Part shown: in pieces, positions 15,664 to 25,790 of the stretch
Layout of the letters: each line of letters opens with the position of its first letter
How positions within the stretch are numbered: the stretch's first letter is position 1
NCBI GenBank assembly: GCA_020536535.1
Contig: JAHLWZ010000453.1
Location: 1 to 35,725 of the forward strand
DNA: 35,725 nucleotides
Origin: Pelomyxa schiedti
Lineage: Eukaryota > Protista > Evosea
Direction: 5' to 3'
The notes under the pieces: model-generated
Told to the model about the DNA's origin: nothing
Database searches by the model: none
The model's input: only the letters and a program-made list of their open reading frames with translations
Translations under genes and position numbers: made by a program

Positions 15664-17868
15664 ATGAGATCTACTGGTGCTTTATTTGTGGGTAATTGCG
15701 TAACTCAACTTTGTCGTAGCCAAAGCAACGATCCCTGGCGTCTTTTTTGAGGACAAGACAGGCAGAAGAGCACACGTGCGAAAACCAAAACCCACAATCG
15801 CAGCAGAATCCGGCACTCCCGCATTGGTAAATGACCCCCAAAGAGAAGCTCTTCTTCAGAGAGCATCAAATGCAGAGCTTGAGAGGGATTCTACTTTGGA
15901 TAGTTTGAAGAAGAGCCTCAAGAACACCAAAGTACCAAAACCTGTTGCTAGTCCCGCACCAGCTGCTCCTCAAACAGCGAAACCTCAAACCCCTAGCTCT
16001 CTGAAGCCCAAAGCTCCAGATACAGGAACAATGCTAATGTTGGAAGAAGAAAGGCTGACAAATAAACTCTTCGGGAAAAAGGAGCTGCACTTTTCAACTG
16101 GAGAGACAATCGCAGTGGATGGGGAGGATGAGGATGACGAAAGAGAGAAAGTTATCCAAGAGTTAGAGGCAGAAGATGAAGCTAGCGATGAAGAGGATAA
16201 TGATCGCGAAGAGTTACCCGCCACCGAATCAGGTATACTCACCTACTTGTTTTCTTTCCTCAAGTAACATAGCAAGGTGAAGAGGACCAAGCCGTGTGGC
16301 ATGATCCTGACGATGAGCAGATGGTCTCAACTCGCTATGGAAGATACTCTGCCAGTGACCTGCGGGCTCAGTTTGTTTTTCTTTTTTCGGGCGTTATCTC
16401 TCACTTTAATCCTTCATAGGCGGGAGCAATTTTGTCTGCAACCAACGACATGGGCTAGGATAAAGCGACCTCGCCTTTCTTCTTCCAAGGACGTAACAGA
16501 CACCCTGATAGGAGAAAGAGGAGCTGCTTTACTAGCCAGTACATCTGATGTATTGGAGTCACAACGGGGAGTGCTGACTCCTGGTTACCTTGGAGTTAAA
16601 AATATTGGTCTCATCCCATCCTCGGTTCGTTTTTCATCCCTACTCCCCTAGTTTCACATCTATAGGGGCAACCCTCTTCTGTGCAATTTCATCTTAACGA
16701 ACAATTGGTTATGTTCACAACACTGCAAGGGCATTTTCTCATGCACAGAGTACTACTCCATAGTAAATCTCCAGTTAATGTAAACGAATGCAGATTGGGA
16801 ACAACATGTTTCACCCAACGGCCCGATTTTGGAAGTTTCATAACTTCTCCTGCTTGTGTAGCGCGTTCACAGCAGATTATACTGAAGCTTTGGTCACTGG
16901 AGATCAACCCTATTTCTTTTCAGTGGATGTGGAATCTGAAAAAATCACGAAGATTCCCTATTTAACAAGTTGTTCCATTCATATCCTTATTACTCCCTGA
17001 CAGTGAATATCAGGGCAAGCCGAAAGGGCTTATCCTCACTTCTCGGTGTCTCCCGACAATAACGTACTTGCATTTTCCGGAGAAGACGGAAACGCCTTAA
17101 TTGTTTCTCGAGCAAGTAAGCAGGTTGTTGGCAAGTGCCGAGTACCTTCCGGTTCACTTCAAAAAACATGCTTTTCCTCCAACGGTTCAAGATTGTTTGC
17201 CCTTGACTGTATGCTTTCACTTTAATTTGCTACAGTATTGCGCACAACTGAATTAACTGGAACCAACTACCTCCCTTAAAAGCCCGCGGACGTGTGACCT
17301 GCTTTGATACAAGGACTTACATGCCTGTGTACTCCTATTCCGACCAGGGCAATGTCCAGTCACATGCGTTTGCCCTCTCTCCAAATGATAAGTGGCAAGC
17401 AGTTGGGTATGAAACTGTCCTTCCACTTGCTCCCGCTCTGGGATTGACTATCTTCCAGCTCTGATGTTGGTGTGCTCAACTTGTACCAGTCTGATGCTCT
17501 ACCAGCAAAGCCCCACCCAAAGCCTCTCTGGTCCTCACTCGCACTCACTACAGCAGTAACCCACATTTCGTTCAACCAAGACTCGAACTTGCTTGCCTGG
17601 AGTTCCCCGACACTGGAATGCTCACTTCGCATTGTATGTATTCCCGCGAGTACCTTTCTTCCTCCTCTGTATAGTTGACTAACCGAATGCACACATACAA
17701 CCAACACCAAAGGCCCACGTTCCATCACAGTCCATCTTTTGCGACTTCCCTATGGGGAAACTCAAGAGCAAAGTACAGACCTTTGCCATAAGCCCTTCCA
17801 GCAAATACATAGCAATAGGCATACCAACAGCAGTCCGGCTCCACTCCCTGGATCCCTACAACCTCTAG
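15664..17868 (+). CDS. UTP18: U3 snoRNA-associated WD40 protein UTP18 (start codon tentative)
   Basis: Acidic N-terminus with EEERLTNKLFG and AVWHDPDDE. WD40 C-terminus: ALVTGDQPYFFSVDV, PKPLWSSLALTTAVTHISFNQDSNLLA, RIAHVPSQSIFCDFP...FAISPSSKYIAIG. All fit the UTP18 pattern. Confidence 0.85.
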
Positions 17869-21740: not shown

Positions 21741-22028
21741 ATGTCGGTGAACGGTGGGGAGCGCAGAGGACTAATGTCAGTTCTTCTCTTTGTTTCTCGT
21801 GCACTGGTTGGGTAGTGACATCTTATATTGTTTTCCCTCGTAGGAGTGGGGATCACAACGATGGAGAGAGCAAGCAGTGGCACACCAACGTGATGTTGTG
21901 CTCAGCAGCGACGGTGGTCGTAGGGACCATCGCTGCCGTCTTCGCCGCGGTTTCTTTCGCCTACGTCTTTCAGATCTGGAGCACTGTGGAAACTCCAACA
22001 GAAGTAATTAATTACTCTTCGTTTTATG

Positions 22029-22065
<37 letters not shown>

Positions 22066-25000
22066 CACATTGTGGCCATAGACGACTGTTATTTCCACTT
22101 ACACTGACACAGTGATCAACTACGTCACGAGCAACAACCTTGTTTCAGTCCAACAGTTGCTCTCAATGGGTGCAGACCCTAATTCTCGCAATCCCTCTGG
22201 GATGACTCTTCTAATGATAGCAGCCGGGAGGGGCTACATGCAAATGGTTACTGGCTTCCCTCTGCGTTCCTTCATGCTTAATCCGGGAAAACCAGGTTGA
22301 TCTGTTGCTAAATGCTGGTGCTGACCCCACATGGCTGGATTCGAGAATGGGAACCACTGCCCTGCACATGGCTTGTCAAGGTATTGAGTTGAGAACATGT
22401 TCTATGCCCATTTCCACTTTTTTTGATTAGGAGGAAACCCAGATATTGTTACTATGCTGGCTGAACACGGAGCATTTTTGGACCTTCAGGCTGCCAGAAA
22501 TGGTAATTATGGCACTTCAAAGGAATGACAGTAACAAAAAAAAAGGGCACACAGCACTGATGGACGCAGTGTGGTATTAACACAATTTCTTTTCTGTTGC
22601 AGCTGTACACGGTAACCACTCATTCCACCAATTTAGGTACAAAAACCCAGATGCCGTGCAGCGGCTTGTCGATTTGGGTGCCAATATGTACCTGTATTCA
22701 CACTATGGCAAAAATGCAACTATGTTCATTGAGACAGGCAAGTCCGCAAAAGATCAAAATCTCTATGACAAGATACAACTTATTTTGGAGTATGTCACAC
22801 CCTTCCGTTTTCTTGTAATGATCTTTTTTATATTATTCTCCAACAAATGCCAGCAATTACGCTAAATCCATTGATGAGACTATTTCCAATCAACTCCTGT
22901 TTAATGCAGTACTTGCCCATGATATTGATACTGTCAGAGAGTTACTTTCTACGGGTTACACAAATATTGATGAAAGAAGACCAAATACAATGACCCCAGA
23001 AGATGGCTATACACCGTATGACAACAAGTCCTTGTCATCGATGTGATCTTTTTCTTTTTTGGCTTCAGACTCCTTTTAGCGGCCCGAGATGGGGAAACAG
23101 AAATTGTGGAAGTATTATTGGAGTATGGAGCTGATATCACTGCAGTGGACTATTTCATGAAGGTGTGACTTTTTTCTTTTATTGTCTCGTTCTCAAGAAC
23201 ATTTTACATCACTCAGGCAACAGCAGGCCATAAATGCGCATACAATGGATTCCCTGACACCTGTCAATCCTTGATAGATAATGGGGGTCTTGAAATTGAT
23301 GCCCAAGGGCCAGTTAATGGAAAAACGGTAAATATGTAGCTGAACACTATTCAACTAGTTATTGCTTTGTGGTAAATACGCTGAACACAATAAAGGCTTT
23401 GCATGATGCTATTTGGCATGGACACAGTGAAGCCGCCTCTGTTTTGATAAATGGTGGTGCACGCACCGACCTCTTCTCCTGGGATGGTCTGTCTGTTTAT
23501 CAAGTTAAATCACTTTCCACTGCATCAAATAACATCTCCCAAATCAGGAAGCAAAGAAGTTCTGGTACTATGATATTATGGACCTCGTTAATGGTGTTAA
23601 CTGTTACGAATCTCATCAAACATTCACTTTCCCCCAGACACAGAGTACATACCTCCATCAGACTCCTTCATAGGAAAAGTTCTGGGAAACGATCTCGTTG
23701 CTGTACAAATATTACTGCAGCAAGGTGAATGGTTTTGTGTAGTGTAAATCTGAATTTCCCGTAGGTCAGGATGTAAACCAGAAAGACAGTAATGGAATGG
23801 TACCACTCGCGAATATTAATCCTATATTAAGAGAGTTCTTTTAAGACAGGTCTGCACTATGCATCTGGTCGATGCTTTGCCCAAATGGTAGATCTTTTAC
23901 TCAACTCTGGGGCAAGTCCCGTTCTTCTAGACTCCGAAATGGGGACCAGTGCTTTGCACCTTGCTGCTCAGGGTACTTGCTACTTCCGGTAGGTTGTTGC
24001 TTTGTGCTGATAAACGGGTTGGAAAAAACCCAAAAAGGGGGATGTGTTGATGTTGCATCTCTTCTCCTGGAGCATGGTGCTTTTCTCGACTTGAACAATG
24101 CGTTTGCGGTATGGGTTTTTTGTCCCACTATTTGCCAACACATTCAAAGGGACATACACCATTGCAAGAGGCAGTATGGTACAAGAACCCTACTGTTTCA
24201 ACGTGAGTTGCTAAATTTTTTTTCGTCATTTAATGTTGTTTTTGACGCGATAAAAAGGCTCCTTATGGAAAGTGGAGCAAATTTAGCCATCCAAAACCAC
24301 TATGGAAATACGGTGGATGACTTCTTAGATGACTCCCCTGTTTCCACAATGGATGTTGTAATCAACAATGCAACTTCTCTTGGTATGTTGAATTCCGGCA
24401 TGTGCTAATGCAGATTAACGAACCAATCAGCTCTGGAAAACCGCATACAAGAGATAGAAGATATACTTGACTCACAACAGCTGAACGCAGCAACGATGGC
24501 GGACAACCTGACTGCCGTCAATCTTCTGTTGGCTGCTGGTTACACAGATCTTAACGAACGACGCCCTAACATTGGTGTAAGATGGGATGGCTATACCCCG
24601 TATGAAAACTAGTTCCTTTCTGGTTTCCTCACCGAGTACCAATCAGATTGCTGCTGGCAGCTATAAATGGATATTCCGATATCTTTTCGAAAATACTTCA
24701 CCACATTGAATGAATTGTTTTTCCATGACTCCAATTACACATCGTTCTTGCATTATTGCAGGCAGGTGCAGATATAAAAGTTGTGGACTACTACATGAAG
24801 TCGACTGTAGCCCACAAGTGTGGGTATGGAGGCTTCCCAGACGTATGCAGAATCATTGTAAATTGGGGAGGTCTGGAATTGAACGCTCAAGGGCCAATAA
24901 ATGGCTACACTGTGTGTACTCCCTCTCGTTCCCTCCGTATTTCCTTTGTTCGGAGTATACACTATACTAAAACGTTACGGCTTTGAAGACCTACATTCTG

Positions 25001-25790
25001 ATGTCTCATTTTCTCCTTGATGTAGGCACTACATGATTCGATATGGCATGGTCATACAGAAACAGCCACGGTTTTAGTAGAAGCAGGTCTCTTATTACCG
25101 TCGCAAATGACACAAGTTCAGCACAAGCTTCTAACATCCTTGTAGGCGCCAAGACGAACCTTGTGGCCTGGGATGGACTTGTCCCCCTAACAGGTCCCTT
25201 TCCTTTCTCCCTCTGCCTTAGACAAACTGCACTCTACAACAGAATCCCAAAAATACGGCTTTGAGGATGTTGAAGATCTTCTTGACAATGCAACTGATCC
25301 CTCCAACAACGTATATCCCTCAAATAAATAATAGCGGGGCCGTTTTCACGATGCTTTCAAGATATCACCAGACATTGATGGCATTGTCAGAGTCATGAAC
25401 GTTTTTGGAGTTATTCCTGGTAAAATGGGTGACATGGAAAGGTTGAATGATTACCCGGTAATAAAATATCAACTCACCACGTGACACATTTCCAGTCTCG
25501 TTTCATCATATGCCCCCAATGTGCGGACTGAACAAGGCTGTTTGCTTTTCGACTTTGTCACGGCCCAAACCCCACCCGGTTCTGGGTTTCCGGCAACCAT
25601 GTACCTGTATGAGAAGTGGCAGACCCAAGCCGATTTGGAGACACACGTTGCACTCCAAGTAACAATGAACCCTTATGTTTATGTGACTGTCTTCTAACTG
25701 TCCTCAAAGAGCACCCAAGACTTCACCAATTCAATGCAGCAATTGCTTGTCTCTAGCAGCACCCAATATTGCAACGATGTATCGCTGTGA
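21741..25790 (+). CDS. Signal-anchored protein with two tandem ankyrin-repeat modules and a C-terminal ABM (antibiotic-biosynthesis-monooxygenase/YgiN/LsrG-like) domain; ~26 introns, start codon uncertain (21741 or 21893)
   Basis: TM segment AATVVVGTIAAVFAAVSFAYVF. Ankyrin repeats: GMTLLMIAAGRGY..MVDLLLNAGAD, MGTTALHMACQGG, GHTALMDAVWYK, GYTPLLLAARDG, GKTALHDAIWHGH, all repeated in a second module. ABM: IVRVMNVFGVIPGKMGDMESLVSSYAPNVRTEQGCLLFDFV...MYLYEKWQTQADLETHVALQSTQDF. The fusion needs a 24-nt intron at 25311-25334. Confidence 0.82.
24679..24738 (+). other. AT-AC (U12-type) spliceosomal intron, 60 nt
   Basis: 5' end ATATCTTTT, branch-like TTTTTCCATGAC ~10 nt from the 3' end, terminal AC. 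Removal gives GYSD|IVLALLQAGADIKVVDYYMK, gap-free with module 1 GETEIVEVLLEYGADITAVDYFMK. There is no GT before the in-frame TGA. Confidence 0.85.

Follow-up and report, generated by a model that had tools for sequence, protein, structure and literature searches.

We found that a 60-nt stretch interrupting an ankyrin repeat in a gene of Pelomyxa schiedti is very probably a genuine U12-type AT-AC intron, judged from its signals and reading frame, and that the public annotation splits one gene in two at this intron. The gene lies in the 35,725-nt stretch of contig JAHLWZ010000453.1 that was analysed here (the window). We lean slightly towards the view that the intron arose de novo within a gene acquired from bacteria by Pelomyxidae. 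Minor introns are already known in this organism; the splitting of the gene is a point new here, and what the intron adds is the probable de novo birth of a minor intron in a transferred gene, together with the cause of the split public model.

The probable AT-AC intron and the gene that it interrupts

The exon structure was derived by hand, and it is identical to the public models, KAH3762474.1 (P0003) and KAH3762475.1 (P0007), wherever those exist. Databases were queried with individual exons or with the public proteins, while the joined translation served for local alignments and trees. The parts of the gene are, in order, a membrane anchor, ankyrin module 1, a linker, ankyrin module 2 and an ABM domain (Table 1). 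In precomputed Pfam annotation, P0007 carries PF12796 and, C-terminally, PF03992 (ABM). The two modules, of ~310 residues each, share 50% protein identity. An exon-level Pfam scan gave only weak ankyrin matches, with no match for the exon after the AT-AC intron, and the protein atlas gave generic ankyrin clusters only. With ~26 introns in ~880 codons, about 1 per 100 nt of coding sequence, the gene is denser in introns than the genome average, which is 7.43 introns per gene (PMC8887013).

Table 1. Coordinates of the gene and of the features in and around its AT-AC intron (positions in the window)
Feature	Position	Strand	Remarks
Single gene, ~27 exons/26 introns	21741..25790	+	exons of P0003 and P0007 mapped to the window
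Ankyrin module 1	22112..23484	+	8 GT-AG introns; spliced model open, 100% identical to P0003 residues 76-384
Ankyrin module 2	23663..25175	+	9 GT-AG introns and the AT-AC intron
GT-AG intron, 47 nt, phase 2	24600..24646	+	position and phase common with module 1 intron 23016-23068
Micro-exon, 32 nt, between the GT-AG and AT-AC introns	24647..24678	+	
Putative AT-AC intron, 60 nt, phase 1	24679..24738	+	ATATCTTTTCG to TTTTTCCATGACTCCAATTAC
5' splice site ATATCTTTT	24679..24687	+	U12 consensus ATATCCTTT; T for C at +6
In-frame TGA within the AT-AC intron	24711..24713	+	stop codon of KAH3762474.1
Branch-site motif TTCCATGAC	24721..24729	+	consensus TTCCTTRAC; 8/9 bases
3' terminal AC	24737..24738	+	
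Exon downstream of the AT-AC intron	24739..24911	+	first 18 full codons at 24741-24794

The exon before the intron ends in ...GGATATTCCG and the next exon opens with ACATCGTT. Read without splicing, the frame continues as ...GYSDIFSKILHHIE and then meets the TGA. When the 60 nt are excised, the exons are joined as TCCG/ACATC and the protein reads ...INGYSD/IVLALLQAGAD...; removal of the form ATATCTTTT...TCCATGAC(9 nt)AC leaves a product that is gap-free against both module 1 and the Mastigella eilhardi orthologue derived from transcripts. At the homologous point of module 1 (23100/23101) there is no intron, and the protein alignment of the two modules is gap-free there. Every excision that keeps the frame, is free of stop codons and rejoins the homologous downstream frame was enumerated. 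None of these excisions starts with GT, and a canonical rescue was rejected: the two GC-AG options (24657 or 24660 to 24761) each delete 14-15 residues, half a repeat. With an alternative AT-AC register, 24681-24740, the protein is unchanged, the junction codon being GAT in place of GAC, but the ATATC donor is missing. The combined donor, branch and AC pattern had a single match in the window, and 100 shuffles gave none.

The 5' splice site agrees with /RTATCCTTT at 8 of 9 bases, T at +6 being the sole mismatch, and the mismatch in the predicted branch helix is A-A. The A at 24728, presumably the branch point, has a distance of 10 nt to the 3' end of the intron; in U12-type introns the branch motif is placed about 8-20 nt before the 3' splice site. 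The branch motif is followed by TCCAATTAC, without a polypyrimidine tract. On all these points the initial annotation proved sound: it had described a frame running into TGA with no GT donor available, an AT-AC excision that restores the match to an intron-free site in module 1, and a donor and branch each one base from the U12 consensus; the alternative canonical splice pattern that it had named as a threat to the intron did not emerge from the enumeration.

U2-type AT-AC introns, a small class, combine a donor of the major type with a polypyrimidine tract. Removal of the present intron by the major (U2-type) spliceosome is extremely unlikely, since its donor is ATATC..., its U12-type branch motif lies 10 nt from the end with nothing pyrimidine-rich after it, and its branch spacing agrees with that of the other AT-AC candidates of the genome. 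What favours such removal is that donor and branch are each one base off the U12 consensus and that the ATATCTTT donor variant shows no genome-wide enrichment. For the U12-type intron, we propose recognition of ATATCTTTT by U11 and base pairing of U12 to TCCATGAC, 10 nt ahead of the terminal AC; excision, by joining ...TCCG to ACATC..., would then restore one ankyrin repeat and one gene of ~880 codons.

Continuity of the product is seen in Mastigella eilhardi, which belongs to the sister genus within Pelomyxidae and is known from its transcriptome only. A word search with P0003 retrieved its orthologue in EukProt EP01105 as two Trinity ORFs, P0168 (661 aa) and P0174 (880 aa, full-length). P0174 has the parts of the P. 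schiedti gene in the same order within one ORF, and both ORFs read ...LQGYTDIVVELLQ... / ...LQGYTDIVVELLQAGADPKVVDYYMK... uninterrupted over the site of the intron. Module 2 of the two species aligns over 312 aa with one gap in total, which is not at the intron site. KAH3762475.1 starts at Met 24795, 18 codons after the intron, and 15 of these 18 codons are identical to Mastigella; with two separate genes they would be untranslated. Both public models were returned by a representative search with the downstream exon.

That the stretch is unspliced, either with two genes as annotated or with module 2 a decaying pseudogene cut at the TGA, is quite improbable. KAH3762474.1, which reads into the intron, does end and KAH3762475.1 does start on either side of it, and the public models were refined with transcript data (PMC8887013). 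However, the published pipeline reported only GT-AG and GC-AG introns and one GT-GG intron (PMC8887013), so an AT-AC intron could only break the gene model. In addition to the conserved codons before the Met of the second model, the remaining exons of module 2 are all open, the orthologue is one ORF, and it is very unlikely that a 60-nt insert would carry the two U12 signals in register by chance. The spliced single-gene product thus appears to be by far the best reading of the sequence. The continuity of the Mastigella ORF would back this product, not the splicing event in P. schiedti; we infer that the intron is actually spliced in P. schiedti and that this depends on the minor spliceosome. 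The two models produced by the split are wrongly named, one "ketosteroid isomerase" and the other "ankyrin 2,3/unc44". Because the published annotation contains no AT-AC introns and a gene is split here, the gene models and the published count of minor introns are likely incomplete.

Similar CCAAT-type 3' ends are found in several introns of the gene (24423-24430, 24639-24646, 24730-24738 and 22626-22636), with CCAATCAG in two introns, TCCAATTAC in the AT-AC intron and CCAATTTAG in one; the likeness may be accidental or mark a local 3' signal. An origin of the AT-AC intron from an introner or repeat was rejected, as the intron and its flanks are unique in the 52-Mb genome and show no local duplication.

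Minor spliceosome and AT-AC introns of the genome

The genome searched comprises 52,367,397 bases in 5337 contigs. Three of the four minor snRNAs are encoded in it, with genes above the Rfam gathering cut-offs (U11, 67.5 bits; U12, 58.2; U6atac, 62.7). The 5' end of U11, UAAAAGGG, and the branch-pairing box of U12, AGUAAGGAAAA, are kept. U4atac was not detected in the genome and the U11-48K zinc finger was searched for and not found, both of which are weak negatives. The initial annotation had proposed a working minor spliceosome and a search for its snRNAs and proteins. Three of the snRNAs bear this out, U4atac and the U11-48K protein do not, and as a new point the proposal falls away: P. schiedti has 90 published minor introns (Larue & Roy 2023, PMC10639083), its minor spliceosome and AT-AC introns are already known, and the class of the present intron is ordinary there.

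The sole convincing U6atac gene (L003:1501-1619, which is G000:C841:53279-53397) has GCCGAGAGA where the Rfam consensus has AAGGAGAGA; this candidate is without the usual AAGGA box for pairing with the 5' splice site. Pairing with the 5' splice site is normally the task of the AAGGAGAGA box of U6atac, and no further U6atac copy with this usual box turned up in the genome.

The pattern ATATCCTT...TCCNTRAC...AC had 16 matches in the genome versus 1 in the reversed control, and its strict form had 6 versus 0. The candidates of both forms are 49-77 nt long, and other AT-AC candidates of the genome have 7-10 nt after the branch motif. With the ATATCTTT donor, the same pattern gave 4 matches versus 3 in the control. 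This variant is not enriched, and the donor of the present intron is accordingly sub-optimal; by our own reasoning, U at +6 could still wobble-pair with a G in U11. When the other AT-AC candidates were tested for open frames within ±120 nt, their exons were too short to inform. In the census on strict signals, AT-AC had 16 matches versus 1 in the control and GT-AG had 5 versus 5, and the AT-AC subtype seems to be dominant among the strong-consensus minor introns of P. schiedti.

The window contains a second candidate minor-type intron, 16981-17013, of 33 nt. It has a perfect donor, ATATCCTTA, and TCCCTGAC 11 nt before the terminal AG, and its excision rids a WD40-like gene of two in-frame TGA codons. 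The frame is likewise preserved by a weak GT-AG alternative, 16972-17013 (donor GTTCCA).

The putative intron shares with the canonical U12 AT-AC introns of animals and plants the AT-AC termini, the ATATC donor, a TCCTTRAC-like branch near the 3' end, the lack of a pyrimidine tract, phase 1 and a lone position among many GT-AG introns. It differs from them in its length of only 60 nt, in having one mismatch per signal and in its place in a gene that is of bacterial type and restricted to one lineage, rather than in an ancient and conserved host gene. The other minor introns of P. schiedti, namely the 90 of Larue & Roy (2023) and those of our census, resemble it in genome, length class and signals. 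However, most of the other AT-AC candidates have the perfect ATATCCTT donor whereas the present intron has T at +6, and the present intron is in a duplicated module whose copy has none. In Blastocystis, minor introns are likewise very short and the AT-AC subtype is apparently dominant, as in our census of P. schiedti (PMC10639083), but Blastocystis belongs to another supergroup and its introns are mostly of phase 0 and ~40 nt (PMC10639083).

Probable bacterial origin of the gene

Each module belongs to an ankyrin family of ~340 aa, and proteins matching the whole 57-residue exon are ~330-360 aa long. The family is encoded in at least 220 GTDB bacterial species of more than 10 phyla (one genome per species scanned), including Bacteroidota, Cyanobacteriota, Actinomycetota, Planctomycetota, Pseudomonadota, Chloroflexota and Myxococcota, and many of the bacterial copies are on chromosomes of free-living taxa. 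Identity of P0007 to proteins of Sphingobacterium and Formosa is 51-53%. The eukaryotic matches that could be identified are those of Pelomyxa, Mastigella and Pelomyxa-like Logan ORFs only. In the representative search, whole-exon matches attributable to an organism were Pelomyxa's own models or bacterial, and the rest were metagenome or Logan sequences of bacterial length; the named eukaryotic orthologue of Mastigella came from the word search. Beyond the two modules, no further paralogue was found in the P. schiedti genome.

In the tree, module 1 of P. schiedti, the Logan relative and Mastigella formed one clade (bootstrap/SH-aLRT, 100/100) and module 2 of P. schiedti and Mastigella another (100/99). 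The two modules grouped together with support of 90/76, and together with the Logan ORFs P0044 and P0081, which are not attributed to Pelomyxidae, with 98/96. This last clade sits among bacterial clades. With the tree unrooted, taxonomic distribution is the basis for the direction of transfer; transfer from bacteria to the pelomyxid ancestor is the parsimonious reading, and we regard this direction as likely. The suggestion of the initial annotation that the gene is lineage-specific and possibly transferred agrees well with its occurrence in a single eukaryotic lineage and at least 220 bacterial species and with its place in the tree.

Ankyrin repeats are as a rule a eukaryotic feature, and an acquired origin is often assumed for the ankyrin proteins of bacteria. 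This general knowledge and the lack of a root in the tree would fit a family that is anciently eukaryotic and was acquired by bacteria, in which case the intron could be old and inherited. We consider such an origin unlikely, since Mastigella supplies the sole named eukaryotic orthologue, all attributable whole-exon matches of the representative search are of Pelomyxa or bacterial, and the family is spread over many bacterial phyla and chromosomes of free-living taxa. In the case of transfer from bacteria, a single-module ankyrin gene would have been acquired by the ancestor of Pelomyxidae and then internally duplicated, and the AT-AC intron and the other ~25 introns of the gene would have been created after the transfer. 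The broad bacterial spread of the family and its restriction to Pelomyxidae among identified eukaryotes make a post-transfer gain the most likely origin of the intron.

Timing and meaning of the probable intron gain

Over both modules there are 13 distinct intron positions. Three are exactly shared and two nearly so, three are specific to module 1 and five, the AT-AC intron among them, to module 2. As 8 of the 13 positions differ, intron turnover is general in this gene. The clades of modules 1 and 2 each contain Pelomyxa and Mastigella, so the duplication predates the split of these genera. The initial annotation had taken the intron as apparently gained or lost after the duplication, and its setting as pointing to recent gain. 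Creation of the intron remains likely in a gene of bacterial type; "recent" was not borne out, the duplication being old, nor was "after the duplication", given how many positions differ. Gain in module 2 after the duplication is conceivable, as is an earlier gain with loss from module 1.

A module 1 intron, 23163-23216, which lies between K and A of ...FMK/AT..., appears to be absent in a close Pelomyxa-like relative. The Logan ORF P0082 runs MKATSGHKC... uninterrupted there and then reads into the next intron. This difference suggests recent intron turnover.

We hold it somewhat doubtful that the intron is older than the internal duplication, with a precise loss from module 1 at a later time. 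The three exactly and two nearly shared positions indicate that the gene already had introns before it was duplicated, the duplication is old, and the presence of an intron varies between close relatives, as at 23163-23216; all these are in line with early gain and later loss. On the other hand, the ancestor would have needed up to 13 introns in ~310 codons, followed by 8 precise losses. Moreover, the intron density of P. schiedti is twice that of Mastigamoeba (PMC8887013), which suggests net gain. A metagenome scan for genomic DNA of relatives found no relative.

The nearest parallel for creation of the intron within the Amoebozoa is the expansion in Physarum polycephalum, another amoebozoan, whose minor introns were in part newly made rather than all inherited. 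The density of minor introns in Physarum is vastly higher, P. schiedti offering one documented case and a modest repertoire; P. schiedti is also without an evident transformed consensus, its odd U6atac box aside.

Minor introns are usually regarded as relics of great age, and their gain as negligible. Since the bacterial ancestor was free of introns, an AT-AC intron in such a gene would be a clean, polarity-free case of minor-intron birth. If the intron was indeed created in the transferred gene, the birth of minor introns would be active in the Pelomyxa lineage, and the largely unannotated, AT-AC-rich repertoire of Pelomyxa would be the second amoebozoan system, after Physarum, for the study of minor-intron origins. 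The case suggests a genome-wide test, namely a count of U12 introns in the transferred genes of Pelomyxa, by which the rate of minor-intron birth would become measurable.
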